Source: Paragordius varius
Taxonomy: Eukaryota; Animalia; Nematomorpha
Assembly: GCA_964247055.1 (NCBI GenBank)
Contig: OZ176051.1
Location: 10,602,001-10,666,000, forward strand
Reading direction: 5' to 3'
DNA length: 64,000 nt
Shown: positions 26,415-62,851 of the stretch, piece by piece
Position numbering within the stretch: position 1 is the first letter of the stretch
How the letters are laid out: every line of letters starts with the position of its first letter
Translations under genes and position numbers: made by a program
Notes under the pieces: generated by a model
What the model was told of the DNA's origin: nothing
Databases searched by the model: none
The model's input: the letters and a program-made list of their open reading frames with translations, nothing else

Positions 26415-29400
26415 CTAAAATATCAAAAATTAAAAATCCCATAAGGAATGGTGTTTGCATATAATTTGCATTGATGAATACATAAATTAATACATGTGTA
26501 AAGATATTAGCTTGATTGGAATTTAATTTCACAGAAACAATGGTAATCACAGGTTTTCATAAGTGGTGTTAAAAATGAATAAATTTATCAAAATTAATAT
26601 TGAAAATTATTTAAAATATCATGCTATGTTTTTTTTGTTGATCAAGCAAGGCGGGTGATTTTCATTGAACCTCAACTATAATAAAACATGTATAAGTTTA
26701 TGATAAGAATATTTTATATGATAATAAATTATATGATTTACCCCCGGCTAAAATATCACAATCCACGATTTCAAAGTGGAATTCATGAACGTTGCCTTGC
26801 AAATTTGATACTGTACCATTCAAACCTATAAGATAGCTGTCTTGTAGCGTTTGAATTATTGGTAAGTCATTAGTATATTGATTGATGGTAATGCTTGTTG
26901 GTAATTGACTAACCGAATTCTGGTGGGAGGATATTTGTTAAAATTTATATAAATATACCATTTACAGTTCAAATTCACCCCTGAACAATCCAAATTCACC
27001 CTAAAATAAATTAGGTGTTTTTAAGATCAAAAATGACCTTTATTTTATAATATTTTTAAAATATAAAATTCTGTTTAAAATTAATATAATGCTGAACAAA
27101 TAATAAACTATGGTCGTAAAAATATATTTCATATTAATGATGAGTTATATTTGCCCGAAAACAGATATCTTTATTTTGGGGTGAATTTGAATTGTTCGAG
27201 GGTGAATTCGAATTGTTCGAGGGTGAATTTGAATTGTAAATGGTATATTATATATATATATATATAAATCGGACAAAATATAAATATATTGCATACTTGA
27301 TGAGCAATAACTATTGGGTTGAAACAGTTAACGAATGGCGTGGTATTGGGTTTAAGAGTCATATAACACATTGTAAATTCACAGGTCTCATTACTGGCCC
27401 CAACGTTTGCGACATACTATAAATATTTATCAAAGAGAGGATTATCAATTATTTAAAAGTTTAAGTTAAAAATATTTATAATAATTAATAACAAAGTAAG
27501 AAATACTTGACTCAATACAGTCATTGGGTACTGTTTACCATACAAATAGGTGATTTGATTAATATCTGTTTTTGATATTACATGACCAACTTCGGATTTG
27601 TATATGTCGGAACCATCAACTCTAACAACTATTTTGTTGGATATTTTTGCCACTTCAATTTCATCGTAGCTGTTTATGTAAATGAGAATATAGTATATTA
27701 GTTATAATTAACTAGGTTGTATGATAAGTTTATGAAAACCAAAATCTTACAAATAGAATGGGATATCATTTCCAAGAATTCTAGTTGTGCTCATTTTAAT
27801 GAATTTTTCGGTTAGGCTTATATCCTCACAGATATCTAATATATGTTATATGATATGATATAATTTTAAAAAATATTATTAAAATTTAATTAATATAAGA
27901 TTGGTGGGTTCAGCTACCTGTTGTTTGAGTAGTTGTTGACATTAATACAATGGGTGTTGTGGATGAACCTTATTATATAAAAGAGTTTAAACAATATGAT
28001 GGTGTCCTAATGTTAAGTCAAAAACATAGTTATAAGCCTACTAATAATCTCGCAAATATAATTTTTGTGATACAGTTGTATCCTTTATTTTATTAAAAAT
28101 TTATTTTTTTCGTTAAATGTGTATAAATATTTAGTAAAGAATGGAAAAAAACAAGAGCTCTATGGTATTAATAACAATATCATATTCATTAAAAAAATAT
28201 TATACCATAAAGGTCTTGTTTTTTCCATTCTTTACCAAATATTTATACCCATTTAACGAAAAATAAATTTTTGATAAAATAAAGGATACATGACTGTATA
28301 TTAATAATTAAATAGTTCTTTGATATTTACCGATTGTAGTTGGTGTTGTTGTGGAAATGTCTCCTGAACCAGAACCTAAAACCAAAAAATGTGATGTCAT
28401 AAATTTTATAATTTTATTTTCATATCTCTATTTTATAATTTTATTGATAATTTATATGTTTTTAACGAAAATTTATTCATAAATTATAATTTTTGGTGAT
28501 GTATGTATCAAATTATTCTAAATATTTACTGAGAGCTATCCATAAATGTATTTTTAATTAAACAAAAAAAGTTATATAGCGATGTTTAAACCTGATTCTG
28601 CAGTCGTGGTGGCTTGAGTGGTAGTAGATGCTGCCATTATAATATAAACAGTTAAATATTAATTGTTAATATTTTGAATGTATAGATTTATATGTAAGAA
28701 GTTTTTTTATAATCAAAAATAATTGTTTAACATTATGCAATAAGAAATAAAGTTTTTTTGTTTTATTTAAATAATGTTCCTAAGTTAACTACTAAATAAT
28801 ATCCACAAGGGAAACATAATTTGCTATAGTTGTTTTTTCGCCTTTTACAGGTGTTAGCCAATAATAATAATAAAATGTTCTTTGCTGTATTTAATAAATT
28901 TGGCTTTAACTAAAGAAATAAAAGCACCTGTCGCAGAGGATGTGGTGTTAAATGGAACGCCTTCGGTAGTTTGGGTGTATAAAGAAGTGGTTGTATCTGA
29001 AATGAAAATTATTACAAATTTAAAATGGTTTTATCAAAAGTTAAGATGTGTTTTTGTTTCTAACATAACTCATTTCAAATCTTTGTGTAAAGGACCACAA
29101 ATATATAATGAATATATAAAACACTACCATATATCGGCATTTTATAGCGGGAAAATAATTTAACAATTAAATGATAAAACATATATAATGTATGTTATGC
29201 AAATGTAATGATTTGCTCTATTTTATAATGTGTTTTGAGTTATGTTTGACTTATCTTTCGTTGAGGCAAATTTATTCTTTGTTGATATATGAATTAAACC
29301 ACTTGGATTTTTATGACATCAACTAAACCAACAATCTTATGGATTACATTGCAATCGATTCTAATTTTTATTCCGGATTTGAATCGGAATCTTTTTGGTT

Positions 29401-32400
29401 AGGGCTCTAACCAGTTTCATTTCATATATTTAAAAAACGGCTTCCTTAGACTTTTGTTTTTATTTTTGGAAAAAAACCTACGTCATGTGTTAGTTTTTGC
29501 ATGTATACTTATGATATATAACCTTTCATAGATTTTCTCATATTTAAATATCATAGTAAAAAAATAAATTTATAATTCTATATAATAATTATGTCACTTT
29601 GTCCACAATCGGCAATAACGAAATCGACGGAGTGAGTGAACCCATGAACTTGCGTATTTCCCGTAATACTTCTGACCAGCGCATTCATAAATATTTTGGG
29701 TTCGAAAGCTTCGGCAGAAACAGATGTTACCACAACACTGTTGGTATTTTGAGTGATTGTAACCTATAATATATCCGTTAAAAGAATATATAATAAATTT
29801 TTTGAGGGAAAATACCAAATAAAATTTTAATATATAGTTTTTTGCTTTTAAAGAAAGTAATTAAATTTTACATTCATTTGCGAAAATTCGTTGTGACAAG
29901 ATGAACTTGTCCCCTCATCGGACGTTCTCATGTACTCTAAACACAAGGTTAAATCTTCCTTTTGGCCAGGGACGTATGTTGCAGAAGCCAATAACTATAG
30001 AAAAGATATTCATTTATTATTAAGCAGTATAGTATTAATGAATGAAAAGGCTCTTAAGGGCAAATATAACTGATAAATTACATCACTAAGTATTTCATAT
30101 TGAGTCGTTTGGAAGACAGTTTGAATTTGACCAAGATAGATATAGTTATTTTGGCTAATATTGTTTCTGTGACAAACTTGACAACCTATGCTGAAATCCT
30201 CTTGAGTGGCTGAAATTGTATTGAAGATTTCGAAAACATCGAAATTCAAAACTCTCTTATTATCCAAGGTCGATTTAATGTATATTTTTGGAGGTCTAGC
30301 GAAATTTAAAATATAAAAAAATATAATAAATATAATTTGTGATGGTCAAATGTTCCAAAAGATGGAATATAACAAATTAATCTAGGCCATTAGAAATATA
30401 ACAAGTAAAATACTTGGAAATAATAAATTATTAATTACAGATATGAGGTGGCAGCATTCAATCCTAATATCTTGACAATTTCGGTTGTTTCGTAATATTT
30501 TGATTCAGATACATAGTCACATATATTGTTAGGGGGACTCACTGTATGATATGAAATATTTAGCATTAGAATTAATTCTGAAAACTCAAAATGTTGCAAA
30601 AAATTAATAAAACTTTAAGTTACCTGTTGTTGCGGTTGTGTAACCAGAACCACTGCCTATAAAATAAATATATATTATTTTATAAAAATCCTCAAAAAAA
30701 ACAATTTTAAACCAATAAAGTATATTTACCAGATTGCGTGGTTGATGAGGGACCTGTTGTGCTTGATGATGCATTAGCGCTTGTCGTAGCTATTTATATA
30801 AAAAATCTTTTCGTGATTCATTTTATCGGTAATAATTTTTAGGATGAAAAAGAAATGACAATAAAAATATATTTTTATAGCTATAAATATGTAAATAAGC
30901 CGGAAAGGGACGACCGGAATGAAAATACCATTATGTCAATTTACTAGTCATATTTTTAAAAAATATTTATAAGATTGCTGCCCCTGACACCATTTAGATT
31001 CGGTATCGATGAATATTTTAAACACTAAACACAATTTATACTCCTAATTATTTACTTGTTTCAAGAGTGGTAGTTTCAACAGTAGTAGATTCAGATGATT
31101 TCGGCACTAATCATAAAATGATAATATTTTATTTATATATTTATTAAAATAAAAATATAATAGTAAAAAGGTTTTTTTACCTGTCGTTGTTGGGTACGTT
31201 ATTGAAGTTGTTGACATGTCTCCAGAACCGGAACCTTAAAACAAAGAATAATGTTTATAAAAAATAATTTTTTTGTTTAAAAAAAAAAGATTATAGTTTT
31301 TTAAACCTGATTCTGTGGTGGTAGAGGAGGCTTCAGTGGTAGTAGATGCTGGCACTATAAAATATTAATTTTATAATTAGTAATTTTATATAAAAATTCA
31401 ATGTTAAAGAAATATTTTTATGGTGATTAATGCTCACTTGTATCGCAGTCTGTGCTTGTTGTGGTTGGAATTGCTGTTAGGAAGATAAGATATTAATTTC
31501 AAAAATATTGATTGAAAAAAGTTAAGTGAATTTATTTAAAATAAACATGCCCTTAGACTCAGGAGTATCCAACCAAATGGCTTAGCGGGACGCATTCGTA
31601 AAATATATGGACTTTATTAAATATTTTAATTTTCTTAAATAAATCTGGTAAATACTATTTTATAATCAATTTTCACCTGTTCATTAAATTTGTTTAAGGA
31701 AAACAATCTAATTTATATTTGAAATTTCTCACAGGCGCCGCATGCAAACCGCGGGCCCTAAAATTATTATAAAATTTTATCAAATAAATTAGCATTATAA
31801 ATATGCCAAATTAATGGTATAGTTATGGATGAAATTTTATTACACAGCCAATAGTATATTCAATTTTAATCGTAGGCTATATTGTCACCATATGTTTGCA
31901 TTGTATTACTCATTGACATGCATTTTTGGAGCGTATGAGTTACTTTTTTTACAAATTAAAAACTCAACTCCTACACGCATTATTGATTTCAAGAAAAAAT
32001 GACCCAAATCTGTCATTTTTGGTAAAATATATTCTTCTATAAGGAAATGATTACATTAATTTTCTTTTTTTATTAATTTAATCAATTATCGTCATCACGC
32101 ATAAACAAATTTCTTGACTGCTTCAAAATTAAGTTGTATTTTGAAACAAAATAATTATAATCCTTTTTAACATTTTTTACGAGGTTGTCGAGTGCGTTTA
32201 GGTGGGACCTCCACCTATCAATTAATACTAAAATTATTTACTTGTTTCAAAAGGGGTAGTCTCAGCAGTAGTAGATTGAGTTGATTGTGATACTAAACAT
32301 AAATAGAAATAATTATTTTTATATATTTGTTAATATAATAGTAAATATAATTTTATGTTTTTTACCCGTAGTTGTTGGGTAAGTTACTGGAGTTGTTGAC

Positions 32401-35400
32401 ATTTCTCCAGAACCGGAACCTTAAAACAAAGAATAATGTTTATAAAAAATAATTTTTTTGTTTTGAAAAAAAAAGATTATAGTTTTTATAAACCTGATTC
32501 TGTGGTGGTAGAGGAGGCTTCAGTGGTAGTAGATGCTGGCACTATAAAATATATTATTTATAATTAGTTTTTTTATAAAAAAATTTAATGTTAAAGAAAT
32601 ATTTTTATGGTGAGTAATACTCACTTGTATCGCAGTCAGTGCTTGTTGTAGTTGGAATTGCTGTTAAAATAAATAATAATTTTAAAAATATTTATTGAAA
32701 ACTTTAAGTGGATATTTTATTCAAACAAACATGTCCTCAGACGCAGGAATGTCCAACACAAATGGCTTAGCGGGCCGCATTTTGATATCAAAAAAACCAA
32801 CGGACCGCAGTCTCAAAATATATGGACATAAATATTTTATTAAATTTCTTACCATAAATCTTTAAAAACTATTTTATAATCGATTTCACCTGTTCATTGC
32901 CGAAATTTAGAAAGATTTATTCAGAAAATTTGTTTAAGGAAAACAATTTATCTTAGATTTGGAAATTTATGTGTGTGCAGCATGCAGACCGCGGGGCCTT
33001 AAAGTAACATATACAATTATTATTATCAAAATTACAAATACATTAGCATTATAACAATGCCAAATTAATGGTATAGTTAAGGATGAAATTTCATTTCACA
33101 GCCAATAGTATTATTTAGTTTCAATCGTAAGCTATATTGTCACAATATGTTTGGATTGGATTACTTGACTGATATAAACCATGAATGACTGCATTTTTTA
33201 ACGTATCAGTTATTTTGTTTTACAAATTAAAAACCAACCCCTAACATTATTGATTTGCAAAACAATCACCCAAATCTGCCACTTTTAGTAAGATATCTAC
33301 TATTTACAATTCAAATTCACCAACAAAATAACTAAAATAAATCATGTGTTTTTTTAGGGAAAAAAATTACCTTTATTTTTTAATATTTTTAAACTGTTTA
33401 AAATTAATATATGGCTGAAAAAATAATAAATATTTTCATATTAATAATTAGTTATAATAGTCCGAAAATACATAATTTATTTTTTGTATCAATTTGATTG
33501 TTAAAGGGTGAATTTGATTTAAGAGTGTGAATTGTAAATTTAACTATAAGGAAATGGGTTTTTTAATTTGTATTTTATTAAATACATCATTTAAAAAGTC
33601 GTACTAAAAAAGGGTTCTAATGAATTTGGTGATCATCACACATTAACAAATTTCTTGACTCCTTTAAAATAAAGTTTTATTTTGCAAAATAATAATTATA
33701 ATCCTTTTTAACATTTTTTCAAGGGTTTCGAGTCCGTTTAGGTGGGACCTCCACCAATCAATTAATACCGAAAATTATTTACTTGTTTCGAAAGGGGTAG
33801 TCTCGGCCGTAGTAGATTGAGTTGATTGTGGTACTAAACATGGAAATAATTATTTATATATTTGTTATTAACATAAAAATATAATTTTGTATTGTTTTAC
33901 CTGTCGTTGTAGGGTAAGTTGTTGGAGTTGTTGACATGTCTCCAGAACCGGAACCTTAAAACAAAGAATAATGTTTATAAAAATATTTTTTTTGCTTTAA
34001 AAAAAAACAAAAAAATTATTATTTTAAAAAACCTGATTCTGTGGTCGTAGTTCCTTCAGTAGTAGTAGATGCTGGCACTATAAAATATATTTTATAAAAT
34101 TTTGTTTTAAAATTCAATGTTATAGAAATATTTTTATGGTGGTTAATGCTCACTTGTATCGCAGTCAGTGCTTGTTGTGGTTGGTATCGCTGTTAAAATA
34201 AATAATAATTTTAAAAATATTGATAACTTGGGATAAACATTCATTTAATTTATAGTTATCTTAGATAATTAATTGGTATATAAAATTTAAGCATATGTAT
34301 TAGCTTTTTAATTTAATAAATTATTTGAATCATAATAACAATATTAATATAATTTTGAGTAAAGGTTTGTATATATATAAACATGCTTTTTTCGCATTTG
34401 TATGACCGTCAATGACTGCATTTATGAGATGTGTGATTTTGTCAAATCAAAATGACAAATTTACCACAAGCTTTTTTTGTAATTAATGGTTGCGTTTGTT
34501 AAAAAGGAATATCTTGTAATTCATGCAAAATATTTTAAATTCATTTTTATATATGCCATTTACAATTCAAATTCACCCTTGCTCAATTCAAATCCACCCT
34601 CGAACAATTCAAATTCACTTTTAAGATTAAATATTACGTATATTTTTATATATTAAAAAAATGAAATTTTGTTTTTACAATAATACTGAAAAAAAACAAT
34701 AAACTATGATGTTATAAAAATATATTTTACATTAATAATGAGTTATATTAGTTCGAAAACACAATTTATTTTTAGGGTGAATTTGAATTTTTTAAGGGGT
34801 GAATTTAAACCATTTAAGTTTGGCCTCATCCACTGTGCATTTTATGATAAGTAAAAAGTATACTCAAAAGTATTTACTTGTTTCAAAAGGCGTAGTTTCT
34901 GCAGTAGTAGAAGATGAATCTGGTATCAAATACGAAAAATAAGAAAAGTTAGTTTTTTGTAGGTTAATTAATTTTTGAAATAAATATATTTTCATATATT
35001 TTTTATATACCGGTCGTTGTTGAATGTGTCATTGGAGTTGATTTAGATGTTGACATATCTCCAGAACCGGATCCTTAAATATAAAAAAATTATGATTTTA
35101 ACGATAAAAAAGAAAGATTATTTTTTTTATACAAACCTGATTCCGTGGTCGTAGATGATTGTGTTGCAGAGGTTGTTGTTGGCACTATAAATATATAAAG
35201 TATTTGCAGATAATATTCTAAAATATCTATATCAATATTTAGCATTAATCATCGTATTAGGTCATTTTAATTAAATTTTCCTTAATTGTTTCATTGTGAT
35301 TGGTAAAAATTAAGACCATATCAAACAATGCCTTTTTCCCAAAAAATAAAAAACCAGAGTCAAATTTTGTAGATGAAGTCACAAATTGAGAAGATAATGT

Positions 35401-38400
35401 AATTTCTATATAATCGAATTTATGCAAATAAAAAATATTTTATTCTATAAATCTCTCAGTAAAAAATTAATTTTAAAGAGAAATTTACCAGTCGTGGATG
35501 ATACTACGGTTGTGTTGTAAGCATCACCGGTAGTTGATTTTACATATACGGACGTGGTTGTTTCTATTGTCAAACAGTAGAGAAAAAGTATATATAAGTT
35601 ATTATTTCTTTAAGAATTATAATATGAGATTAGCTAAATTATTAAAACTATATAATCATTTTAAAAGCTAATTACATAACTTATACGATTGATTTTAAAT
35701 TGGTAATTCGTAAAATTTATCTATTATGATGTAAGTTTTGTTTTATAATATATTGATCAAAATTAAAGAGTTACCTTGTTGATCACCACATTCGGCAATA
35801 ACAAAATCGACAGAATGATAAAATCCATATATTTTGGTTTTTCCTGTAATGCTAATGATCAATGCATCTTCAAAAGTGATTGGTTCAGTTTGCGAGGACT
35901 CAGACCCCACTACGACACTATTTTTACCTTGAGTAATTGTAACCTATAACATTCATTTTTGTTAAAAAGAGAAGTTTTATTAATAATATAAATCAATTTT
36001 TAATTAAAGTGGATGATGATTTAATTAAAAAAAATACATTCATTTGGGAAAACTCTTTGGTACAAACAACATTATTCAACCCGTCGGCCGTTCTCAGGTA
36101 ATGTAAGCAAAGGCTTAAATCTTCTTTCTGGTTGGGTGTATATGTTGTCACAGCAAACAACTAAACAATAATTATATATGATATAAGAAATAAAATCAAT
36201 TGATAATATATATATATATATATATATATATAGTAAAATGGATGAAATAAACAACTTTACAAGAAATAAAGAAATAATTAACAAATTACATCACTAAGAA
36301 TATTGTATTGGGCGGTACCAAACACAGATTTAATTCCATTAAGATAACCATTCGTTATTTGACTAATATCATTTTTTTGAATATCTTGACAGCTCATAGA
36401 ACCAACGCCTCCGATACATCCTGGATAAATTGTGTTGAAAATTTCGGACATATCAAAACTTAAAATTCTCTTGTTATCCGTAGTGGGTATAATAAAGATT
36501 TGCTCAGGTCTGTATAATAACATAAAATTATATCAAAATTATATTGTTATTAGTCGTGTAGCTTACAAGGAAAATTAAGTCTTATAAAATCCTACCAAGA
36601 TTTAAGTGAGAAAGTTGAAAAATAGCGCTTTTGATATTAAATTATTTTATTTTTAAAAGTTTAAAAAAGTTCAGCCGTAATGTGTTATGTGGGATTAATT
36701 ATTTCATTATCAGTTTTTTTGGGATTACATTATATATCAAATATGTTTTGTTAAAATAATTGTAAAGGATGCCTTGTTGATTGACTCTAATGGAGTTAAA
36801 AAACTTATCTATGAATCTAGAAAAAAAGTTGAATTTTCAGCTGCGAAGACTTTCATTCATTTACTTTTATAATTTGTTATATTAAATGAATATGCATTCT
36901 ATCAAAAATAATATCATAATATGCCCTAATTGCGATATTGCGATATGTGATAAAGTAACAAATTCTTAAATAACCCAATTCTCATAACCTAAGGCCCTCT
37001 GTTTTGATATGTATTATGATTCTGTTTTTATCGTTTTAATCAAAGTGCCTAAAAATAATTAAAAAAACTTACAAGGAAAGTGTGGTTTCATTCAGTCCTA
37101 ACATTTTAAGAATTTCCAAGGTGTCGTAATTTTTTGCTTCGGATGTGAAGTCACATACGTTGGTGGGGGGTGTCGCTTTAAGATTTAAATATTTTTTAGT
37201 TAGAAAAAAAATAAATACCAAAGTATTTTAAAAAAGTAAGCAAAAATTACTTGTTGTTGTCGTAGATCCAGAACCACTACCTAAAAAATAAAAATATTGT
37301 AAAATTAGCATGGTATATATAAATGTATATATGAATAATATATTTAATGTTGATTTAAAATTTACCAGATTCCGTTGTAGTTGAGGGAGTTGATGAGCTT
37401 GTTGACTCAGTGCTTATGGTACCTACATATATAAAACAAAATATATACAAATTAAATTACATTGAAATAAGTAATTTCAGTGACAATTTTTTCTCACTTA
37501 ATGGACTGGTGAAACCTGATCCAGATCCGCCTGCAAAAGCAAAGAAAAGACATTAATAGATGTTTGTATATGGGTATATTTTTAACAATTAATTTTAATC
37601 ATAATCTAATTTACTTTGTGTCGTGTAAGCAGTAGGCGAAGTGGTAGGTATAACTAAAGCAATAGTAGGAAATTATATTTTAGTTATTTATGGAAAAATA
37701 TCATATTTTTAATATTAAATTATAATTAACGTTTTTATTGTTTTTACTTTCATCGCATTCTTTAATCACAATATTTGCCGTATGGTGATATCCATGAATG
37801 TTGTAAAAACCTCTCACTTCAGCAACAAAGGCATTCTTAGTCCTATTTATGCTCGGTTGTCCGTTAACATGTGTTATTACCGTAACATAATTTGGTTCTT
37901 GACGAATTGTTGCCTTTTATGTTTTATAATAAAAAATTTTAAATTTGTAAAAAATGAATTATGTATTGAAATCAGAAGAGTTTTTTTGGAAGAATTTTAG
38001 CTTAACATACTGTTTGAACCAAAAAATGGCCATTACGGTTTCAAATAATTTACTGAATCGTTTAAAATATTTTATATTTCGCAAAAAAGTGTTCAAACAA
38101 TAATATTTCCGTTCACACATTTAAATTTTTAGGACCGAAACCAATTGCCCATATTAGTTATTCTCAAAAAAATATTTGCAATCCAATTTTTGGAAGAACG
38201 TTTAAGGACCGAAAAAATCGGAGGTGCAACAAATTTCTGCATTATTACTCCCTTGCTTTTTAGTAGCGACCCACCTAAACCCCATAAAGGGAAAATGGAA
38301 CATTTTCCGTGTTATTATTTTCAAACTACTAATACAACAAAAAACGCATTTATGATTTTGGCCATATATGGAAATGGTATATTTTTACCCTTAAAATATA

Positions 38401-47325: not shown

Positions 47326-47359
<34 letters not shown>

Positions 47360-53300: not shown

Positions 53301-54131
53301 CGATTTTAATTCTAATTTATATAATTACCAGTTGTGGTTGAGGAGGCAAGAGGAGTTGTAGTAACAGGTTCAGCTAAAACAGTATAAAATGCTTATATTT
53401 GAGACCGTTATGGAATTAAAAAACCACAAATGCTTATTCGTTGGCATTGTGATGACTATAAATATTATTCGAAACAAAATAAATCCAAATTTATCTTTCT
53501 TATGGCTCTTGTAATATCTAAAATGATTTAATTATTTAATAAAATGCATCAGCTTTTATCATTTGAAAGGCAAAAAATAAAATTATTTTAAGGGTTTAAG
53601 TTTTAAGTCTTGTACATGTATCTGCTCGTTAGAAAGAAAATTGGTGTTTATACGCCATGATAGATAATGAATTCGCAGAATATTATGCTAGAAGATTTTA
53701 AATCGTAAAGTGAAATATATGCACCAAAAAATATAATGGATTAGTAATAAAATAGAAAAAATTAGCGATAAATCCAATTAAACTTTAAAATTAAAAGGTT
53801 GACGGTTTTTCTGAAATTTCAGATGAAATTACCAATAATTTTGAGTAATGTGTAATAGATAATAAATTTTTTAATAATAAAAAACCTTAAAGTATAGTCC
53901 TTTTTAAATTCATTAACTTTGTTTCCAGGTATAAGTGCATTTGGGAGAAAATAAAATTTTGCGGTTTTATCATGGATTAAAATATTTGAAAATAATTTTA
54001 TCATTCCATTGAGCATTGGATTAGTTATAAAAAGTATCATTAGGTGTATGCCACACACTTAGTTTGGAAAATATTTAGATAATCCCCTCAAAAATTTAAT
54101 AATGAGTTGAACATAGATAAATACCTTATGT

Positions 54132-54169
<38 letters not shown>

Positions 54170-57100
54170 AAAGTAATTAATAAGGGCTTCGCTACTTTAA
54201 AAATTCTAAATTTATTACATTTATTTGAAATTTCTTAAAAAGTTTTAAAATTAAATTTTAACAAAAACCTGGTGAGGATGTTGTTTCTTCAGTTATAACT
54301 GACGTTACAGGCGACTCCATTGTTGTTGACTCAGACCCAGCTATATTTATAATAAAAGTTTAACAATTGAGGTGTGGTTATTTATTAATTATTTTTACCT
54401 ATATTCAAAAATAAAATTGTCCTAAATATTAAATAATACCAGTTGTGGATGAAGATATGACTGGGGATGATGTTGTATCTCCAGATCCTGAATCTAATTG
54501 CACAATTATTAAAGATTAAAATAAGTAAAAGTCTAAGAGGTGGTGTATCATCTAATTTATATTTAAATTATATCAATCTTAATTTGCCATGCAAAATGAA
54601 GAGCAGACAAGTATTAAGCAACATAAGCTTAACCCATTTTTATTTGTGCTTTTTTGCTTATAACATTTAATAATTTTGGTTATAATTTGATATTATCTGA
54701 ACCAAGAACTCAATGAGAAATATTTTAGTCTATAGTTATAACTACTATAAACTGAAGACTGATACATGGTGTTATAATGTTAAGCGGATGCGAAATAGTT
54801 TTATTATTTAAAAGCTGGAATACCAGTTGTGGTTGTGTCAAGAGAAGGCGTGGTTCCTTCACTTCCTATTGTCGTTTCAGGGGTAGTTTCAATAGTTGTA
54901 CTTGTGGACCCTGACCCAGATTCTATTGTAAGTTTTGAATATTATTATACATTCTCATGTAATATATTTTGTCGATATAAAGTTTTTACTATGATATTAT
55001 AAATGATATACCATTTACAGTTCAAATTTACCCTTGAACAATTCAAATTCCCCTTCAAACAAAAATTCAAATTCACTCTAAAATTAAATTATGTGTTTTC
55101 AAACTAATATAACTCATTATTAATATAAAATATATTTTATGGCCTAATTAATTATGTTTTTAGTATTATTTTAATTTAAAACAAAAAATTTTATTTTTTT
55201 AAAATATATTAAAAAATAGGTAATTTTTAATCAAAAAACATGTTATTTATATGAGGGTGATTTTGAATTTGAATCAAGGGTGAATTTAAACTATAAATGG
55301 TACATTCTGCGAAAAAATAAATTTTAATAATTTACCTTCGGTTGTAGTTATAACAGAAGGAGTGGATGTCATTGTTGAGGCTGTGGAAGTTTCGGAACTA
55401 GTTGACGCTGAAACAGTTGAGGTGGAATCTATTGGCCCTAATAATGAATTTCTATAACATTGGCCAAATGCATTAAAGTATGAAGAACTATTTTTTAAAA
55501 TGCTGTTTTTCATTTTTTATTTTTAGATTATTATGCAATTATTCATAAAAGGTAATTCTTACAAATCATATAATCAAAGATTTGTTTAAATTTTGCGAAT
55601 TATACCTGTCGTTGTTGAGTTATATGATGCAGGTGTTGTATCTTCAGTAATGACGGATGTTTTTGGCGACGTTACAGTAGTTGTAGATAAGCCAGAACCT
55701 CCATCTATTACAAAAAATTATTTAAATATTCCCAATTTTTTTGAAAAATTTTTGACATTTTTTTATCAAGCAAACCTTGAGTTGTTGTGGACTCTTGGGA
55801 TACTGTTGTGGATTCAGAACCTAAAAATATTTATATCTTATTTAACCCTGTTAATGAAGAATTCTTTATAATATTTGTAATAATTTATCTTGTAAAAAAA
55901 ATAATAATCTTATTTTATTGCAAAACCATTTAGTCTGTCTCATTATCTAATAATTTATATTGTCAAAATCATTGTTTTGAGCTAACAGAATCATGTCGAA
56001 ATTTCAAAAAAACTACTAATCATTTGAGAAATTTGTATTAATAGAGTTAAACTATAAATATGCCAAATATTCCTAAAATATATTTTTTTATCAGATTTAA
56101 TAAAAAGCAGGATAATATTTTGCTTATAGTTACTCGGTACCACGGTGAAAATTAAAATTTATCCAAATTAACTGCTTTATATTTAAACTTTATTTTATTA
56201 TATTGTAAGGTTATAATCCGTTATATTCTTAATATATTTAATTCCATACTGCTTTCTGTGGTTGTCACTGTAATTGTTGAACTTTCTGTTGGGGAAACGG
56301 TGGTTGTACCTTTTTAATATAACATTATTTAAAATCATTCATATTTATTGATATAATTATATATCTATAAAATTCAATACTTTCGATAGATGGTGTGATT
56401 GGACAATCTGGGTTAGCTGTGGTTGTTTGAACAAAAGTAGTTGCTAAAAATATTTTTTATAAAATTAAGCGTACGATAATAATACAGTAAAAATAAAAAT
56501 TATACTATGGACAAAACGTAATAATACAAAAACAAATATTTTTTTTTAATAGACAACCCTACTTTTTTAACCTTAATTTTTCCTGACAACAATAAGTAAT
56601 AATTAAATAAATTGAATTTGAAAAAATATGGTTGTCTTGTAAAAAAATTTGTCCTTACATTTTTACATTTTCTCGGTATAATTCATTTTTTTAATAATTA
56701 CTTTCCACGGTTGAGGAAATTGTTGATTCTGTTGATGTTATGGGACTGGTCGTAGACGATTCCTCTTGTGGAGTTGTTGAAAGAGTTGTAGTATCTTCTG
56801 AAACTATAGATAAAAATACACGAATCATAATTATGACAATGTGCCAGTTTTGGGATATGTTTTAGAGACTCAAAATTATTTTTATATGAAATGAATGATA
56901 GCAATCAAATCAAATAAAATTTGGGAGGCCTAATAAAATAAAAATGTATTAAGCATCAGATGCATATCAACATTAATATATTAATACTCCTAACAATTTG
57001 GTTTTACTAAAAGGTAAATATTCAACATTTTTAATCTAAATCATGCAACATCGCTATGTAAGCTATTTGAATATCACTGATTTTCATAAAAGATCATCAA

Positions 57101-59888
57101 ATATTTTATGCTTACACCTGGTATAAAATACTTATAAAAAAATTTAAATTTAAACAAAATATAACCATACATCATATTTAAATAAATATAATATATAATA
57201 ATTATTAAAAATTACCCGTGGTGGTTGTTTCGAATCGTCCAGGGGTAGTCTTTTCCGTAATGACTGATGTGACAGGTGATGAAACTGTAGTTGTAGAGTC
57301 AGATTCCTCATCTATACAGAGCATAATTTCAAAATATAATATATATATAAATGTTAAATTCAGGAATCAAGATAACAAAAAATATTAAATGTGATAAAAC
57401 CTTTAGGTGTCGTAGACTCTACTGACATGGTTGTTGTAGATCCTGTGCATTAAAAATCAAATTATAAATAAATTGATCTCTATATTATACCATTTACAAT
57501 TCAAATACACCCTTGAACAATTCAAATCACCCTTGAACAATTCAAATTAACCCTAAAAATAAATTAAATGGTTTCGGGCTAATATAACTCATTATTAATA
57601 TGAAAGATATCTTGATGTCATAGTTTATTATTTTTTCATTACTATTTAAATTTTAAACAAAATTTCATTTTTTTCAAAATATAAAAAATATAAGTAATTT
57701 TAAATCTTAAAAAAAAACACTTAATTGAATTGTTCGAAGGTGAATTTGAATTGTTTAAGGGTGATTATGAATAAATGGTATATTTTTTTAGAAAGTTAAG
57801 TAAAGATTAGGTTCAAAATGATTTAAGGATATTTTACCGCTTCCGCCAGGAGTAACTGTTATTGTGGAACCTTCTGTGGTGGAAACCGTTGTGGTGCCTT
57901 AAAAAGTAGATTTAGGTTATTTTTGTATAGAGAGGATGACTGTCATTTTTTTATATAAATATTTAATATGGTTATGTTAGTTTACTTTCGATGGTTGGGG
58001 TTGTTGGACAATCTGGGTTAGCAGTGGTGGTTGTTTCCATAACTGGAGTTGTTGCTAACATTTAAAATATTATTTTAACACTTCGATTCAAATTGTGGTT
58101 AAATAACCCAGACTAATTTTGAGTTAAGATTTTTAAAAAACTACTGAATGAAACGGTCCCAATTTAAATTTATGCTTTTATCCTAATAAAATTATATAAA
58201 TATGTCAAATATCTAAATAAAATTTTGTTTTGAAAAAAAGTTCCATGTCAGACGCCATTTTTATTTCACAAAATTTTTGCAACATATCGTCTTCATTTAA
58301 TTTTAAGGGTAAAATTAAACCTAATTTTTTATTTAAATTACATCTAACATTGATAGAAATAGAAAAAGCGATTTGTATTTATTTTAATTTTACCATTGCA
58401 CACATGTCACGTTGACTAAATTTGTACCTTTCGGTCTTAGCTTAGAATAATTAATTAAGTATTTTTTAATAAAAAATTTTATATGTTATATAAGTACAAA
58501 ATTTTGCAATGGTTTTGATTCCTTCTATATATTTTAAAGAATTTTGAAACAGGCCTGGGGTATATAATACCCCAATTTAAATCGCCGGACTAAAATGAAT
58601 GTGTTATATCCAAGTGTTAATAAAATAAATATGGCCAATAAACTTGAAATTATTTTTAATTTTTAATATATATTACTTCTGCCACTTGAAGAAGTTGTTG
58701 TTGATTCTGAGGGGGTGGGACTAGTTGTGGATGTTTGATCTTTCTCAGTGGTGCTTGAAAGAGTTGTGGTACTTTCTGAACCAACTTTACATACATTTGA
58801 AAAAAATGTTTAAAATATCAACACAAGAAATAATTCATGTTGCACACATATACTATAAATAATTTAATATTTTTTGTTAGTAAACCTTATTTTATATCAT
58901 TTTTATGTTATATTTAGATTTTAATTTTTCAGAACTATACATAATGAAAATTTTACACTCTATACTTTTAGATTTTTGTAACATTAGACCCACATTGTAT
59001 AATAATGGGCTACACCCAAATTCAGCCATTTAAATGAAAAAGAATGGAAGCACAACCGAAACCATAATAAATTTGGCAAAAAATTCTTTGGATTTAAAAT
59101 GAACAATCCATGACGGAACTTAAAACTATTTTATTAATTTCTTTTGATCTAAATGCGAAATATTCATTTTGGCTCATAACGTATCAAATGATAGATGCAT
59201 AAACATAAACCTTATTTTACACCCCTTTTTTCATTATAACATATCTGTAAAGTAGTTGTAAATTAGTGAAAACCTTGAGGAGTAGTTGTGGTAGAAGAAT
59301 CTATGCTGGGAGTAGATCCAGCCGTACTTTTTACTGAAGAAGATGCCGTTGTTGAAAGCGGCGTGGATTTTGATGAGGTTTCTCGGGAAACGGTAGAGGT
59401 TTGGGCTGTACTAGAAACGGTTGAACTGGAATCGGTTTCTAAAATTATATAAAATACAGTAAAAATTTTAAAAAAAATATAAATATCAATTAAACTCTTA
59501 AATTTTCCTATAAAACAATTTACAATTTTATATTATATTTTATATAGAGAGTGCAAACATCTTCATTTACTATATTGCAACTCAAAACGATATGTAATAA
59601 TTAGAAATGGTAAAAAAAATTGGTTGTCTTTTTTTAGAAAAATTTTCTTCCTTTTTGTTTTGTCACTGCAATTTTAATTTTTATTTTTAATACCTTTAAA
59701 AATGTTATTTTATTTATGTTTCTAATTTTCAGATAACTAAAACTAATAATATCCATATTTTATCATTATTTGGTAAAAATTTAATATTTTATAGTATAAA
59801 CCTTGGGTAGTAGTTTCTTGCGTTGTGGATTGACTGGCCATTGTGGTATTATATTCTGAAGGCGTAGTTTTACCAGTTACAACTATTA

Positions 59889-59946
<58 letters not shown>

Positions 59947-62851
59947 AGACTTAAGACAGATATAATTTTTATGTTTGTTTATAAATATATATACCTTGAG
60001 TAGTTTCCGATGAACCAGTAGAACTAGTTGACAGGGTTGTGGCTAATATAATATAATCATAATTAAATATTATTGATAATAAAAAATATATGATGATGTA
60101 TAATAATATATTTTATTTCATACCCAAACAATCAATGAGTAAAAAGCTTAGGGAATGACGATTTCCATCACATTCAAAGATAGAAGGGTCGGCAAACATC
60201 AAAAACGAATTTGATAATTGTTTAGTTTCCCCATTTTTATACTGCATATATACGCCTTGTTCATTGGAAACGACAGTATCCTACGCATTTTTTGCAATAA
60301 AATATAATTAGATTATATATATGTAATAAATAGGTTCTAAATATAAAAATTAAAACCTTATATATCATTTTTAATAAATATTACCAGTTGTTGGAGGTTG
60401 GGTAGGAAAGGACATATTTTGCTTAAAACACCTGATTTTTCATTGTAATAACACAAAGTTGGTGTGTATATTGTTTTGGGGTTGATAACTTTGCATGTCA
60501 TCTGTGATAATAAGACAAGAAATTGAAAATAAAAGGACGTAAAAATATTTTTGATTGATAAAACAATATTGTAATTTTTTACAATTAATTTTTTACAGTT
60601 ACAATTTTCATTGCTTTATTAATTTCGCACCCAAAATCATAAGATACCTTTATAACAAGATTTAAAAAAATAGGTTTCTATAAACATCTGTCTTTTACTT
60701 TTTATGTTTTGTCTCTATTATTTTAATTTTTTCTGTATAAGAATTTAGAGTAAAATGAAATTTACCGTAATACTCACAAGATATAATTTTATTTTTTTTA
60801 GTTTTAAATTAGGCTATAACATGTATATCTTACATCACTGTTCATTGTCATATGCATGGGGTATAAACGTGAAAGCCATGTATATTCATCCATTAAGTTG
60901 GGATACCAATCTTGAGAACCGCCAGTAAGCATGCCCATATGCTGATAAACTGCATAAATCTTTTCATCTTCCGGAACTCTCATGAGCTCAACAGATCCCC
61001 TAAACAAAGAATTGAAATATATTTAGCCGAGTGATTTTGAGAAATAAGTGATAATTAATACTTTGCGGATGGTATTTCATTTCCAGTTAACATTTTTATA
61101 TCGTATGTCCCATTGGTTGAAACCATGTCACACAAAGCTTCTAAAAAATTTGGAATACATTTAATCAAAAAAATTATTCTAAATTTAATCTTATAGTAAA
61201 ACAACATCCACAATTTTATGCATTATTTACCTGGTGGGGCTGTTGTTGTTTCAATATCATCCGTCGTAGTTGTTTCTATTTCTATTATTAAATTTTAAAG
61301 AATTTTTTAAGTATATATTTATTTAAATTTATTTTATAAATTATTATATGAATATAATATACCATCAGTCGTAGTGGAGAAAAAGGTTGACAATGTTGTA
61401 CTGATAGGTTTAGTTGTAACGTCTAGAAATATATAATTATGTAGCAATTATTTTTAAACACAAAGATTTTACAAAAATATATTACCTGTGGGAGATGTGG
61501 TAGATAAACTTTGATCTATATCAAAATATATAATATATTAATATCATCTGGTATTAATTTAAATATTCTATCAACCCAATTTAACACAAAGGGTGGTCAA
61601 ACTTTCAACACTACTTTTTGAGAAAATTATACACTAACACATATTATTAATTAATTAACATGCATAAATTACTAAAAATGCTACGCATTAATTATCTGAC
61701 ATAACTAATCACCGCCTTTTATATAACTCAATAGGTGAAAAAGCCGGTGTTTCTCTATGCAAATTATGATATTTGATTATAGGTTTCGTATTATGTTTTT
61801 TCACCCGAAAATTTAAAATATTTAAATTAGATATCCTAAATCAGGTCTTAGTCTGGGCACCCTCGGGTCTAAAGAGAATCATAAAATTGAAACTTTATAG
61901 AAAAAAATAAAAATAATACCGCAATGTTTAAAGATGATTTTGAGTTTATGCATGCTTCCACGAATAGCAAAATCACCCATTATGTAGATGATAAAATGTC
62001 CTTCATTTTGACTGGGTACTTTGCCATCAATGCTAACACCAGTTGGTAATTGATTTATGGAAATCTAGTTGATAAGATGAAATACATTTTTATTATAAAA
62101 AGTGGTTAAAACAAAAATATATTTATATTTATTTTATCACAATAATTTAGATTAACATACATCATGTGACATTTCTGGAACAAAGCAAACGATAGGATTT
62201 GCTGTTTCATCAATGATGGCAGTGCACAACGTGGTTGGACAAGTTGGGCATTTTTTAAGATCGATTTGTAACTAAATACATTATATATCGAGATAAGAAA
62301 TAAATTTATTATGGTATTTCGCCAAATGAAAAGGATCATAGTTTTAACCCTTTTTTTACTATAATCAAACCCATTCGAGATCAATATACCTTGGTAAAAA
62401 ATTTCATTTCCAAGCGCTAAAACTAATGCGGACATAGAAATCCCTAAACAAAAATTTAAATTTAAATTCAGAAATTTATACATTTGTTTCAATTATCCTT
62501 CATCCGTAAAGATATATTTGGGATAGTCATTAACAGTTAGGGTAGAATTCAAGATATTAAGGAATAATTGCCAATATTTTTTTTTATGGAATAAACCAAA
62601 GCCTGGTCATGAAATATTTGAATAGTAATATCTTAACACTTACATTACTATCGATGAGAACATTCTTTCCTTTACCGTTTTTGGTGTTATTGGGTTTTAG
62701 CGATTGTAAAATGAGTAAATCCTTAACCAAACTGTTTTGAGCTGATCGACTGGGAAAACTCCAAGGGGCTCCGGATGGCAAATATAAATGCTTTCCCTCA
62801 ATTATCCACACTAATTTATCACCTTCACGGATGAATTTAACATTCTCCGAC
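26380..62851 (-). CDS. Giant multi-exon mucin/proteoglycan-like gene: ~110 exons, ~3,400 aa, nine copies of an unassigned Cys-containing module separated by PTS-rich cassette exons; 5' end not resolved
   Basis: Manual exon chaining from 62851 to 26742. Every exon is bounded by AG/GT on the minus strand (two use a shifted AG), phases are compatible and there are no in-frame stops. Summed length is ~10,230 nt: 35 module exons and 75 phase-1 exons, each a multiple of 3. Products are T/S/P-rich with SGSG motifs. The 3' coordinate assumes the candidate terminal exon at 26380-26414. Confidence 0.85.
26742..27835 (-). CDS. Globular module 9 (4 exons)
   Basis: Exons 27751-27835 (DICEDISLTEKFIKMSTTRILGNDIPFY), 27507-27669 (YDEIEVAKISNKIVVRVDG...PMTVLSQ), 27297-27416 (YVANVGASNETCEFTMCYMTLKPNTTPFVNCFNPIVIAHQ), 26742-26919 (NSVSQLPTSITIN...LQGNVHEFHFEIVDCDILAG). 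Phases 1-2-0-0-1. Confidence 0.8.
26956..27245. mobile_element. MITE family A copy 1 (~290 bp; TIR CCATTTACA(A/G)TTCAAATTCACCC, TA flanks, 21-bp subterminal repeats)
   Basis: TA-ccatttacagttcaaattcaccc ... gggtgaatttgaattgtaaatgg-TA. Non-coding interior, intronic, four more copies in the window. Confidence 0.85.
27918..28996 (-). CDS. Four phase-1 PTS cassette exons between modules 8 and 9
   Basis: 28928-28996 (69 nt), 28592-28630 (39 nt, shifted acceptor), 28331-28375 (45 nt, GSGSGDISTTTPTTI), 27918-27968 (51 nt). Confidence 0.75.
28071..28298. mobile_element. Foldback MITE, Tc1/mariner-type ends (TA|CAGT...ACTG|TA)
   Basis: About 100-bp arms are near-perfect inverted copies (tgtatcctttattttattaaaaatttattttttcgttaaatg / catttaacgaaaaataaatttttgataaaataaaggataca) around a ~25-bp loop, with TA on both sides. 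Confidence 0.8.
29598..30541 (-). CDS. Globular module 8 (4 exons)
   Basis: 30439-30541 (SPPNNICDYVSESKYYETTEIVKILGLNAATSY), 30082-30295 (PPKIYIKSTLDNKRVLNFDVFEIF...QYEILSD), 29872-29994 (LLASATYVPGQKEDLTLCLEYMRTSDEGTSSSCHNEFSQMN), 29598-29763 (VTITQNTNSVVV...HGFTHSVDFVIADCGQ). Confidence 0.85.
30624..35563 (-). CDS. 18 phase-1 PTS cassette exons, including a tandemly repeated 4-exon block
   Basis: Block exons: a (36 nt, IPTTTSTDCDT) 34154-34189, 32625-32660, 31438-31473; b (45-48 nt) 35137-35184, 34033-34077, 32494-32541, 31307-31354; c (54-63 nt, GSGSGDMSTT) 35011-35073, 33901-33954, 32366-32419, 31181-31234; d (42-51 nt, TTAETTPFET) 34878-34919, 33783-33833, 32242-32292, 31056-31106. Also 35489-35563, 30730-30789, 30624-30656. 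Confidence 0.85.
31560..31760. mobile_element. Degenerate hAT/Charlie-like MITE remnant, copy 1
   Basis: Starts caggagtatccaac, resembling Charlie-type CAGGGGTGTCCAA ends, and contains GC-rich gcgggacgcat / ccgcgggcc motifs. No right TIR or TSD seen. Confidence 0.45.
32744..33000. mobile_element. Degenerate hAT/Charlie-like MITE remnant, copy 2 (co-duplicated with the exon block)
   Basis: caggaatgtccaacacaaatggcttagcgggccgcat ... gcatgcagaccgcggggcc, at the equivalent intron position to copy 1. Confidence 0.45.
33298..33542. mobile_element. MITE family A copy 2 (degenerate)
   Basis: ctatttacaattcaaattcacc ... gggtgaatttgatt...gtgaattgtaaatt, with interior similar to copy 1 and in the same orientation. 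Confidence 0.7.
34554..34810. mobile_element. MITE family A copy 3
   Basis: ccatttacaattcaaattcaccc with three 21-bp subrepeats; right end gggtgaatttgaatt...ggggtgaattt is truncated. Confidence 0.75.
35775..37175 (-). CDS. Globular module 7 (4 exons), close paralog of module 8
   Basis: 37073-37175 (TPPTNVCDFTSEAKNYDTLEILKMLGLNETTLS), 36290-36509 (PEQIFIIPTTDNKRILSFDMSEIF...QYNILSD), 36038-36160 (LFAVTTYTPNQKEDLSLCLHYLRTADGLNNVVCTKEFSQMN), 35775-35943 (VTITQGKNSVVV...YGFYHSVDFVIAECGDQQ). Confidence 0.85.
36206..36232. repeat. (TA)n microsatellite, intronic
   Basis: Direct reading of the sequence. Confidence 0.9.
37251..37653 (-). CDS. Four phase-1 cassette exons (two with GSGSG)
   Basis: 37615-37653 (39 nt), 37498-37530 (33 nt, SGSGSGFTSPL), 37366-37422 (57 nt), 37251-37280 (30 nt, GSGSGSTTTT). 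Confidence 0.8.
37748..39114 (-). CDS. Globular module 6 (4 exons)
   Basis: 39030-39114 (TDICKEITETGWYDMRKVLNIPNYPKY), 38734-38938 (PEKTFIRRDGTTLTWVIDAKEIYNTSIDCYHNRPEC...NVTIESN), 38522-38641 (LYVEQNMTGRALLLICTFFLDRDETTHRTKCFSPMTEYRN), 37748-37913 (ATIRQEPNYVTV...RGFYNIHGYHHTANIVIKECDE). Confidence 0.85.
39471..40264 (-). CDS. Five phase-1 PTS cassette exons
   Basis: 40211-40264, 39925-39981, 39769-39822, 39629-39682, 39471-39512 (54, 57, 54, 54 and 42 nt). Confidence 0.8.
40522..41725 (-). CDS. Globular module 5 (4 exons)
   Basis: 41632-41725 (SMPEDICDWIQQSGRYNINQYLKIENYPTY), 41001-41211 (PMNPFIERTPQGQLVWTLDFPEIY...YEFVSD), 40806-40919 (FDLHDKNTTSKATLTVCYSQLTEGLYSTCHIPETNEKI), 40522-40687 (LNVKQESDGLL...SGSYDLNGAYHSIRIIIDNCAP). 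Confidence 0.85.
41818..41871 (-). CDS. Single phase-1 PTS linker exon between modules 4 and 5
   Basis: 54 nt, ETTTPMSSTITTTTRETT, AG/GT bounded. Confidence 0.8.
41957..43554 (-). CDS. Globular module 4 (4 exons)
   Basis: 43470-43554 (IPDMCDIVTETGNYTIRDVIDEPIPDF), 42767-42971 (PEKIELERKNGLITWVVSG...EIVWLHNTY...NYTIESD), 42555-42671 (LVVSFDSPYVTEPMKLCRLHFDDDVANVVCFVPASTTKI), 41957-42131 (NKVIQQNVNVYV...IGNFEVSGNRHKFKIVIKDCEESE). Confidence 0.85.
43038..43392. mobile_element. Non-autonomous hAT element with 8-bp TSD CCCTAAAT
   Basis: ccctaaat at 43030-43037 and 43393-43400 flanks ends CAGTGGTGTTACCA / TTGGGAACCACTT (imperfect TIR). An 8-bp TSD with central TA is typical of Buster/Charlie hAT elements. 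Confidence 0.8.
43646..44399 (-). CDS. Three phase-1 PTS exons between modules 3 and 4
   Basis: 44268-44399 (132 nt), 44065-44166 (102 nt, VSGSGSGDTT), 43646-43711 (66 nt). Confidence 0.8.
44501..45854 (-). CDS. Globular module 3 (4 exons)
   Basis: 45773-45854 (HKEICITVTESGFYKIRDFIKPLPAI), 45244-45448 (EEQVYLERTMDLVYWPISAEDIY...QIVWLERF...TVIESD), 45002-45112 (LKIIINNTMVSPIELCAVELVSTPSVTCFIPMTTLNQ), 44501-44651 (DTIVQGTDGIQI...YGDFRIVKTGKHTFKILLEECSP). Confidence 0.85.
45938..46910 (-). CDS. Five phase-1 PTS/SG cassette exons
   Basis: 46818-46910 (ETGSGTTTKESP), 46418-46507 (ESGSGTTTLES), 46240-46275, 46071-46124 (GSGSGSGFSTT), 45938-45994. Confidence 0.8.
47156..53064 (-). CDS. Array of 13 paralogous 99-105 nt exons (ESGSGSESTTxTPTQSTMTYSADTVDTTTTPTTTE) plus one 93-nt ETGSGS exon
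   Basis: 52960-53064, 52646-52750, 52426-52527, 52041-52142, 51681-51785, [51201-51293], 50884-50982, 50522-50626, 49836-49940, 49481-49585, 49096-49197, 48300-48404, 47768-47872, 47156-47260. All phase 1-1, open, AG/GT bounded. Confidence 0.92.
47329..47356. repeat. (TA)n microsatellite, intronic
   Basis: Direct reading of the sequence. Confidence 0.9.
48464..48638. mobile_element. Foldback MITE, Tc1/mariner-type ends (TA|CAGTATG...CATACTG|TA)
   Basis: The arm cagtatgcattttaatggttgcttatttcacaatatag matches the reverse complement of ctatagtgtgaaataagcaaccattgaaatccatactg. Inner arms (catagtagtgtat / atacactactgtg) also pair. TA flanks. Confidence 0.85.
53329..60042 (-). CDS. 18 phase-1 PTS cassette exons with diverged internal duplication
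   Basis: 59995-60042, 59802-59882, 59274-59438, 58677-58784, 57986-58054, 57838-57897, 57401-57442, 57216-57311, 56702-56803, 56381-56443, 56250-56309, 55776-55820, 55606-55704, 55336-55437, 54824-54922, 54440-54493, 54269-54340, 53329-53373. All are multiples of 3. The five exons 58784-57216 are paralogous to the five exons 56803-55606. Confidence 0.82.
54132..54160. repeat. (TA)n microsatellite, intronic
   Basis: Direct reading of the sequence. Confidence 0.9.
55009..55302. mobile_element. MITE family A copy 4 (interior inverted relative to copies 1-3)
   Basis: TA-ccatttacagttcaaatttaccc ... gggtgaatttaaactataaatgg-TA. Confidence 0.85.
57488..57780. mobile_element. MITE family A copy 5 (interior inverted relative to copies 1-3)
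   Basis: TA-ccatttacaattcaaatacaccc ... gggtgattatgaataaatgg-TA. Interior ttcgggctaatataactcattattaatatgaaa is approximately the reverse complement of the copy 1 interior. Confidence 0.85.
59895..59941. repeat. (TA)n microsatellite, intronic
   Basis: Direct reading of the sequence. Confidence 0.92.
60124..61140 (-). CDS. Globular module 2 (4 exons)
   Basis: 61062-61140 (ALCDMVSTNGTYDIKMLTGNEIPSA), 60834-60999 (GSVELMRVPEDEKIYAVY...EYTWLSRLY...TMNSD), 60385-60501 (MTCKVINPKTIYTPTLCYYNEKSGVLSKICPFLPNLQQL), 60124-60280 (DTVVSNEQGVYM...FECDGNRHSLSFLLIDCL). Confidence 0.8.
61231..61515 (-). CDS. Three phase-1 PTS exons between modules 1 and 2
   Basis: 61486-61515 (30 nt), 61363-61422 (60 nt), 61231-61281 (51 nt; an alternative in-frame acceptor gives 45 nt). 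Confidence 0.78.
61920..62851 (-). CDS. Globular module 1 (three exons found; first exon not identified)
   Basis: 62644-62851 (SENVKFIREGDKLVWIIEGKHLY...NVLIDSN), 62161-62271 (LQIDLKKCPTCPTTLCTAIIDETANPIVCFVPEMSHD), 61920-62064 (ISINQLPTGVSIDG...MGDFAIRGSMHKLKIIFKHC). Confidence 0.8.

Follow-up and report, generated by a model that had tools for sequence, protein, structure and literature searches.

Gene structure at the hairworm locus

A 64,000-nucleotide stretch of the genome of the hairworm Paragordius varius (assembly GCA_964247055.1, contig OZ176051.1, positions 10,602,001 to 10,666,000; hereafter the window, whose internal numbering is used throughout) contains, on the minus strand of 26742-62851, nine homologous copies of an extracellular-type protein module, designated M1-M9, with a spliced length of 154-204 amino acids (aa). 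The copies were rebuilt from every GT/AG site in open frames, M8 being read base by base. A motif scan found G-x2-H-x8-C at eight minus-strand sites and H-x8-C at a ninth, and a plus-strand reading was dropped because every module motif is on the minus strand, where pieces of the modules alternate with numerous short Ser/Thr-rich stop-to-stop frames.

Every copy forms a self-contained four-exon cassette with phase-1 introns at its borders, set between Ser/Thr-rich micro-exons. The cassette comprises exons 0, A, B and C with intron phases 1|2|0|0|1 in all copies, M1 being without exon 0, and carries four Cys residues that are here numbered C1 (exon 0), C2 and C3 (exon B) and C4 (exon C). Exon 0 (about 25-33 aa, present in 8/9 modules) encodes the N-terminal Cys between a phase-1 acceptor and a phase-2 donor, and the motif C-x6-G-x-[YF] is kept in 5 of its 8 copies. 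Exon A (54-73 aa) closes with x-S-[D/N/Q] right before GT(A/T) at phase 0 in all nine modules. Exon B (37-41 aa) is in phase 0 at both ends and encodes two Cys 11-14 residues apart, also in all nine, while exon C (48-59 aa) ends in a phase-1 donor just past H-x8-C in 9/9, with G-x2-H in 8/9 and G-x-H in M3. The arrangement is that of a class 1-1 cassette, with a phase-1 acceptor in 8/8 modules that have exon 0 and a phase-1 donor in 9/9. The frequencies of H-x8-C and G-x2-H in the rebuilt exons are those given in a preliminary description of this sequence. That description had also proposed [ILV]-x-S-[DNQ] at the A/B junction, of which S-[DNQ] holds in 9/9 but the leading [ILV] does not (M in M2, F in M5), and C-x(11-14)-C-[FH]-x-P in exon B, of which the Cys spacing stands in all nine copies but C-[FH]-x-P at the second Cys does not hold in M2, M7 and M8.

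The homology of the copies is supported by leave-one-out hidden Markov models (HMMs), in which a profile of eight modules recognizes the ninth with 42-127 bits (15-53 bits for exon C by itself); together with the shared exon plan and phases, these scores substantiate the earlier claim of nine copies of one module. Exon-level HMMs run over all 2,098 open frames of the window retrieved nine exons A, nine B, nine C and eight exons 0, all on the minus strand and with E <=2e-8, the next best frame having E >=0.06; as these HMMs include the copies themselves, the result shows the count and not its significance. Pairwise identity between the window modules is 14-31%, except for M7 and M8, which are 56% identical. 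Internal duplication of the module was ruled out, with an hhalign probability of 0.2% for the N-terminal against the C-terminal half.

At the 5' end of the gene, a putative first coding exon stands in the place of exon 0 of M1 (Table 1). Splicing from its GT donor at 62936 to exon A at 62851 would restore a codon split in phase 2 (TG+G = Trp), which is also the phase of the intron between exons 0 and A in the other modules. Upstream in the window, neither splice-site reading nor the exon-level HMMs revealed an exon 0 for M1, and the ATG exon is probably the start of the gene. The boundary positions coincide exactly with the points where M1 exon A begins (62851) and M9 exon C ends (26742). At the 3' end, M9 is followed either by a splice at 26741 (GT, phase 1) or by about 14 further codons to a stop near 26700.

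Table 1. Coordinates of the module gene in the window, in the order of transcription
Feature	Position	Strand	Exons or content	Leave-one-out HMM (bits)
Putative first coding exon	62937..62983	-	ATG at 62983 and 15 mostly hydrophobic codons, in place of M1 exon 0	
M1	61920..62851	-	A 62851-62644, B 62271-62161, C 62064-61920	57.9
M2 (most divergent copy)	60124..61140	-	0 61140-61062, A 60999-60834, B 60501-60385, C 60280-60124	41.8
Spacer exon run M2-M3	45938..60042	-	~25 exons of 15-41 aa, AG/GT flanks, phase 1	
M3	44501..45854	-	0 45854-45773, A 45448-45244, B 45112-45002, C 44651-44501	82.1
M4	41957..43554	-	0 43554-43470, A 42971-42767, B 42671-42555, C 42131-41957	120.0
M5	40522..41725	-	0 41725-41632, A 41211-41001, B 40919-40806, C 40687-40522	92.1
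M6	37748..39114	-	0 39114-39030, A 38938-38734, B 38641-38522, C 37913-37748	126.7
M7	35775..37175	-	0 37175-37073, A 36509-36290, B 36160-36038, C 35943-35775	119.9
Spacer exon run M7-M8	30730..35563	-	~10 exons of 16-24 aa; several start SGSG(D/E)MST	
M8	29598..30541	-	0 30541-30439, A 30295-30082, B 29994-29872, C 29763-29598	124.9
M9 (last module)	26742..27835	-	0 27835-27751, A 27669-27507, B 27416-27297, C 26919-26742	58.1

Ser/Thr-rich micro-exons between the modules

The modules are separated by about 47 exons of 15-43 aa, all of phase 1-1, in which Ser, Thr, Pro and Gly make up at least 55% and Ser plus Thr at least 40% of the residues, as in stretches of the O-glycosylation type; the spacers are presumably O-glycosylated. 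Many of them open with SGSG(S/D)E, and in the Ser/Thr/Gly-rich run between M2 and M3 many have SGSG(S)E at the start and TTT(E/G) at the end. From the module and spacer exons, the whole protein is estimated at about 2,800 aa. SGSG starts followed by acidic residues resemble glycosaminoglycan attachment sites, and the encoded protein may accordingly be as close to a proteoglycan as to a mucin.

The micro-exons that start with SGSG(S/D/E) and continue with acidic residues are numerous on the minus strand of 46000-55000 and 31000-35100. Some spacer exons also form near-identical sets, for example 52766-52629 and 52567-52403, or those at 33954, 32419 and 31234, pointing to recent local duplications.

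Relatives in Gordionus

With HMMER, a profile built on the exons C of all nine modules was compared with 1.84 billion representative proteins. Of its six matches, four are genuine relatives with several modules each, and every one of them comes from the horsehair worm Gordionus sp. m RMFG-2023: XP_065322587.1 (P0001, annotated as 'mucin-22-like' in RefSeq), CAK9293091.1, CAK9294258.1 and CAK9298068.1 (P0004). A word-indexed search added two further Gordionus proteins, P0007 and P0008, and the full-module HMM scores 113-250 bits on the Gordionus proteins. A bacterial repeat protein (P0005) from the exon C profile search was judged false or convergent. The match to a protein of the fungus Diversispora epigaea (P0006, RHZ71351.1; E 5.8e-6 against the exon C profile) was also rejected: the protein contains a twice-repeated stretch resembling the G-x2-H-x8 hairpin, and because this covers only the last hairpin (HMM positions 132-179), the resemblance is probably due to chance or convergence. 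Further word-indexed searches, which are weak negatives owing to their length windows, retrieved only P0004 itself when P0004 was the query and nothing at 99-315 aa with the nine-module alignment, and a blastn comparison with 92 kb from the Gordionus genome revealed no match to the window at E 1e-8. On present evidence, the module family appears to be confined to hairworms.

The Gordionus proteins share the four Cys and the exon plan with the window gene, and P0001 and P0008 also have Ser/Thr-rich linkers, those of P0008 enclosing two full modules. They differ from the window gene in having 2-5 modules each, with 13-32% identity to the window modules, and in that some of their modules have Tyr for the conserved His or Lys for the conserved Ser. 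P0007 is the most informative relative with respect to secretion and exon structure, consisting of a 24-residue signal-peptide exon and two modules, with its C-terminus exactly at C4; mapped on its own locus, the signal-peptide exon is followed by 0|A|B|C twice, with breaks as in the window and phase-1 borders. The secreted context proposed in the preliminary description is supported by this signal peptide, by the Ser/Thr-rich exons between the modules and by the 1-5 N-x-S/T sequons found in each module.

On chromosome OX940783.2, P0007 is 35 kb from P0003 and P0002 is 17 Mb away, and M9 is closest to the C-terminal module of P0002 (32% identity). P0004 (778 aa), encoded on another chromosome, has about four modules back to back and is without Ser/Thr-rich linkers.

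Residue conservation and the question of a catalytic site

Conservation was assessed over 19 modules, namely the nine of the window and ten complete or near-complete modules of Gordionus. C3 and C4 are present in 19/19, C2 in 18/19 and C1 in every module that has exon 0, while an additional Cys pair occurs in a variable loop of exon A in M5-M8 and in some Gordionus modules. The signature that unites the window and Gordionus modules in one family consists of the four-exon plan with intron phases 2/0/0, the pattern C1...C2-x(11-14)-C3...[HY]-x8-C4, and S-[DNQ] closing exon A. The Ser at this position is kept in 18/19 modules, with Lys in module 2 of P0007, and the His in 16/19, with Tyr in three Gordionus modules; the residue preceding the Ser is variable (D, E, K, L, N or V).

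The Ser and His had been described as invariant, which is true within this gene but not across the family. Their presence in 9/9 copies is what favors the reading as an enzyme, active or degenerate, in which the two would form a catalytic pair. Among the Gordionus modules, however, the His is Tyr in 3/10 and the Ser is Lys in 1/10, making a catalytic Ser/His site unlikely and weakening the earlier suggestion of one, while being compatible with a structural or binding role; the replacement of His by Tyr points to a side chain that packs or forms hydrogen bonds and not to a general base. In addition, the Ser is not in a G-x-S-x-G or other nucleophile-elbow context, no hydrolase was returned by any search, and nine tandem catalytic domains with mucin spacers would have no known precedent. 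An enzymatic function is therefore regarded as extremely improbable.

Searches for known families and the predicted fold

Searches with Pfam hmmscan, covering the window exons, six Gordionus proteins and the nine separate modules with E up to 1-10, gave nothing above cut-off, and the sub-threshold matches (DUF6081, FkbH_N and End_beta_barrel) were set aside as scattered and inconsistent. Sequence profiles of the PDB gave nothing below E 0.25, and no neighbor was found in the ESM Atlas by language-model features.

Structures were predicted with AlphaFold2 for modules of the Gordionus paralogues and not for a window copy, using an alignment of 11 Gordionus modules and the correctly aligned window exon fragments, in which the second half of exon A is represented by the Gordionus rows alone. 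Model 1 (P0007 residues 27-206) has a mean predicted local distance difference test score (pLDDT) of 83.2 and a predicted template modeling score (pTM) of 0.80, being poor only in the variable loop 54-65. In this model, a helix at 2-7 containing C1 is followed by a short strand and a short helix, a hairpin at 31-46, a helix at 67-80, a strand at 86-90 and eight more strands. The strand 86-90 ends at the conserved Ser and is connected by a two-residue turn to the next strand (93-95), and the last strand (169-177) starts at the His and leads to C4. Model 2 (P0007 residues 207-385; pLDDT 74, pTM 0.64), of a module that is 21% identical and is without the Ser and His, shows the same order of elements, and both models have 13-14 strands and one long helix.

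Taken together, the models suggest that the module would be a compact, mainly antiparallel-beta unit with a short N-terminal helix, a beta-hairpin carrying the motif L-x-W-x-[IV]-D-G-x-x-I-[YF], a variable loop in which two additional Cys are often present, and one longer helix ahead of eight strands. C1 (at about residue 5) would pair with C4 (third from the end), tying the termini together, and a C2-C3 disulfide would staple the exon B hairpin. With both termini clamped in this way, the module would form a rigid, shear- and protease-resistant bead on a glycosylated thread. The Ser closing the strand at the A/B junction and the His/Tyr opening the last strand would serve as fold-stabilizing or ligand-contact residues and not as a catalytic pair.

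Foldseek searches of both models against the PDB returned no match at E <=0.001, the best rows being galectins (probability 0.5-0.69, TM-score <=0.25), and searches of the ESM Atlas by shape gave best TM-scores of 0.37 and 0.36 for models 1 and 2. The galectin rows reflect a faint likeness of the beta core (model residues ~47-170) to galectin and concanavalin A-like sandwiches, which would be in keeping with a possible glycan-binding role in the extracellular matrix. It is rather unlikely, though conceivable, that the module is a very diverged beta-sandwich lectin of the galectin or concanavalin A-like type, binding the glycans of its own or neighboring mucin threads.

The preliminary description left the module unassigned and did not recognize it as VWD, SEA, CUB, MAM or CysD, and this is supported by these sequence and structure searches, none of which gave a clear match. 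The SEA domain is an alpha/beta sandwich of ~120 aa (beta-alpha-beta-beta-alpha-beta), often with a G/S-V-V-V self-cleavage hairpin; it gave no Pfam match, the best 50 of 48,161 representatives include no SEA chain with either of the two models, and the modules are without a GSVVV motif. VWD, CUB, MAM and CysD likewise gave no Pfam match at E up to 10 and did not appear in the structure searches. Nor does the hairworm module, with only four conserved Cys in ~180 aa, show the Cys pattern of these families, which in MAM domains is four Cys with an N-terminal C-x-F-E and in CysD ten Cys in ~110 aa.

A related possibility is that of a SEA- or GAIN-like self-cleaving domain, in which the Ser would attack the preceding peptide bond, leaving two halves that are held non-covalently and part under force. 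The conservation of the Ser in 18/19 modules agrees with this, as do its location in model 1 at a strand end before a two-residue turn, a geometry similar to that of the SEA cleavage hairpin, and the layout of beads in a mucin, which recalls MUC16 with its SEA repeats. However, the residue before the Ser is not conserved, whereas self-cleavage in the modules known for it depends on a partner residue that is fixed (G in SEA, H-L in GAIN, G-D in VWD). No SEA or GAIN match was obtained by sequence or by structure, and the C1-C4 clamp would keep the halves joined regardless. Self-cleavage is thus considered highly unlikely.

A proposed disulfide-stapled bead in a mucin- or proteoglycan-like protein

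The explanation that we favor, with a probability of about 0.6, is that the nine copies represent one real, undescribed extracellular domain of a large secreted mucin- or proteoglycan-like hairworm protein, acting as a disulfide-stapled binding or cross-linking bead. The beads would bind non-covalently to a glycan or to another matrix protein, and would thereby cross-link or anchor a secreted gel. A bolder reading, which appears distinctly unlikely, is that the module is a new fold confined to horsehair worms, in which the Ser and His/Tyr form a functional site (a glycan pocket or a force-sensitive self-processing hairpin) controlling gel assembly in egg strings, the larval cyst wall or a cuticle coat.

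Several points weigh against the favored bead model. The disulfide pairing, the proximity of the two ends and a possible binding site are inferences, and the shallow alignment behind the models could have produced a fold that scores well and is nevertheless incorrect in part. For the gene itself, a signal peptide would be provided solely by the short putative leader. The runs that contain the stretch are all DNA: no splice joints were found in 37700-43600 (5,901 letters) with four runs, of which three have DNA contigs that cover the introns, and the one possible RNA run was empty. Finally, the listed polymorphisms are not depleted in module exons, although the sample is small and selected (n=33); 11 are located in module exons, 5 of them synonymous and 6 changing a residue, and the reading frame stays intact in each case.

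The results for splice joints, for the RNA run and for exonic polymorphism could also be expected of a decaying or never-expressed gene relic, whose modules are without present function, and such a relic might also be suspected from the adjoining 25-kb satellite and from the lack of any protein of this locus in the library of 1.84 billion proteins. On the other hand, 35/35 module exons are open, with intact GT/AG sites and conserved phases, and every listed variant keeps the frame. M7 and M8 have a ratio of nonsynonymous to synonymous divergence (dN/dS) of 0.25 despite saturated synonymous divergence (dS 1.27), indicating that the copies are kept by selection, and the related Gordionus genes were annotated by RNA-guided prediction. 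A relic is accordingly very improbable. Judging from the missing library entry, standard annotation appears to miss or fragment such genes.

Comparison with known mucins and micro-exon genes

The bead model places the hairworm gene beside mucins of the MUC16 (CA125) type, in which a folded domain of 120-200 aa is likewise repeated between O-glycosylation-type spacers. The MUC16 repeats also resemble the window modules in being multi-exon cassettes with a short Cys-Cys loop inside. Compared with the SEA domain of MUC16, the hairworm module is larger and mostly beta, with 13-14 strands, four conserved Cys and no G/SVVV site, and the spacers of the hairworm gene, unlike those of MUC16, are cut into dozens of micro-exons. 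Another parallel is provided by the CysD domains of MUC2, MUC5AC and MUC5B, Cys-containing globules that interrupt the Pro/Thr/Ser-rich regions and are thought to cross-link the gel non-covalently. CysD domains are ~110 aa in length, with ten conserved Cys and a WxxW site of C-mannosylation, in contrast to the ~180 aa and four conserved Cys of the hairworm module.

In its exon structure, the gene resembles the micro-exon genes (MEGs) of schistosomes, which also have long chains of very short symmetric phase-1 exons; here these encode the Ser/Thr-rich parts. Unlike MEGs, the hairworm gene has its micro-exon chains broken at nine points by a folded domain of four exons. Because the internal introns of the module are not symmetric (phases 2, 0 and 0), the domain can be skipped or kept only as a whole. 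The locus is a clean natural case of a micro-exon gene in which a four-exon cassette of class 1-1 has been multiplied.

Mucins with folded beads, and micro-exons, were already known; the bead itself belongs to no described family. If this and the absence of a clear structural counterpart hold, one of the least studied animal phyla would contribute an extracellular domain not described before, perhaps with a fold of its own. The exon-level profile C1...C2-x(11-14)-C3...[HY]-x8-C4 provides a sequence handle for hairworm matrix and secretion genes.

Additional observations

The part of the window preceding the gene in coordinate order (1-25282) is occupied by a 482-bp satellite, with 52.7 head-to-tail copies of 98% identity and 36.7% GC, and its end is separated by ~1.4 kb from the last module exon, on the downstream side of the gene. 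The open frames of the satellite are short and scored no better than chance with the module HMMs. From ~26,000 to its end, the window has 25-30% GC, and its 26-27% outside the satellite matches the 26.93% GC reported for Gordionus montsenyensis (bioRxiv 10.1101/2023.06.26.546503).

In Gordionus, a 328-aa gene without annotated function is located 6 kb upstream of P0007 and in the opposite orientation (OX940783.2, 90.55 Mb; L002 414-3672). The last module of P0004 is very diverged and has a different tail.

In the best DNA run, the region 37700-43600 is represented by two haplotypes, and within one segment of 440 bases some contigs show 0 differences where others show 44 differences plus 27 gap letters; haplotypes so clearly different indicate that the gene is highly polymorphic. 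Contig depth rises 3- to 10-fold at 40261-40457 and 43216-43412 in two runs from one organism, and ~10- to 30-fold at 41837-42033 in a run from another organism, and these jumps probably reflect dispersed repeats within introns or a spacer exon.

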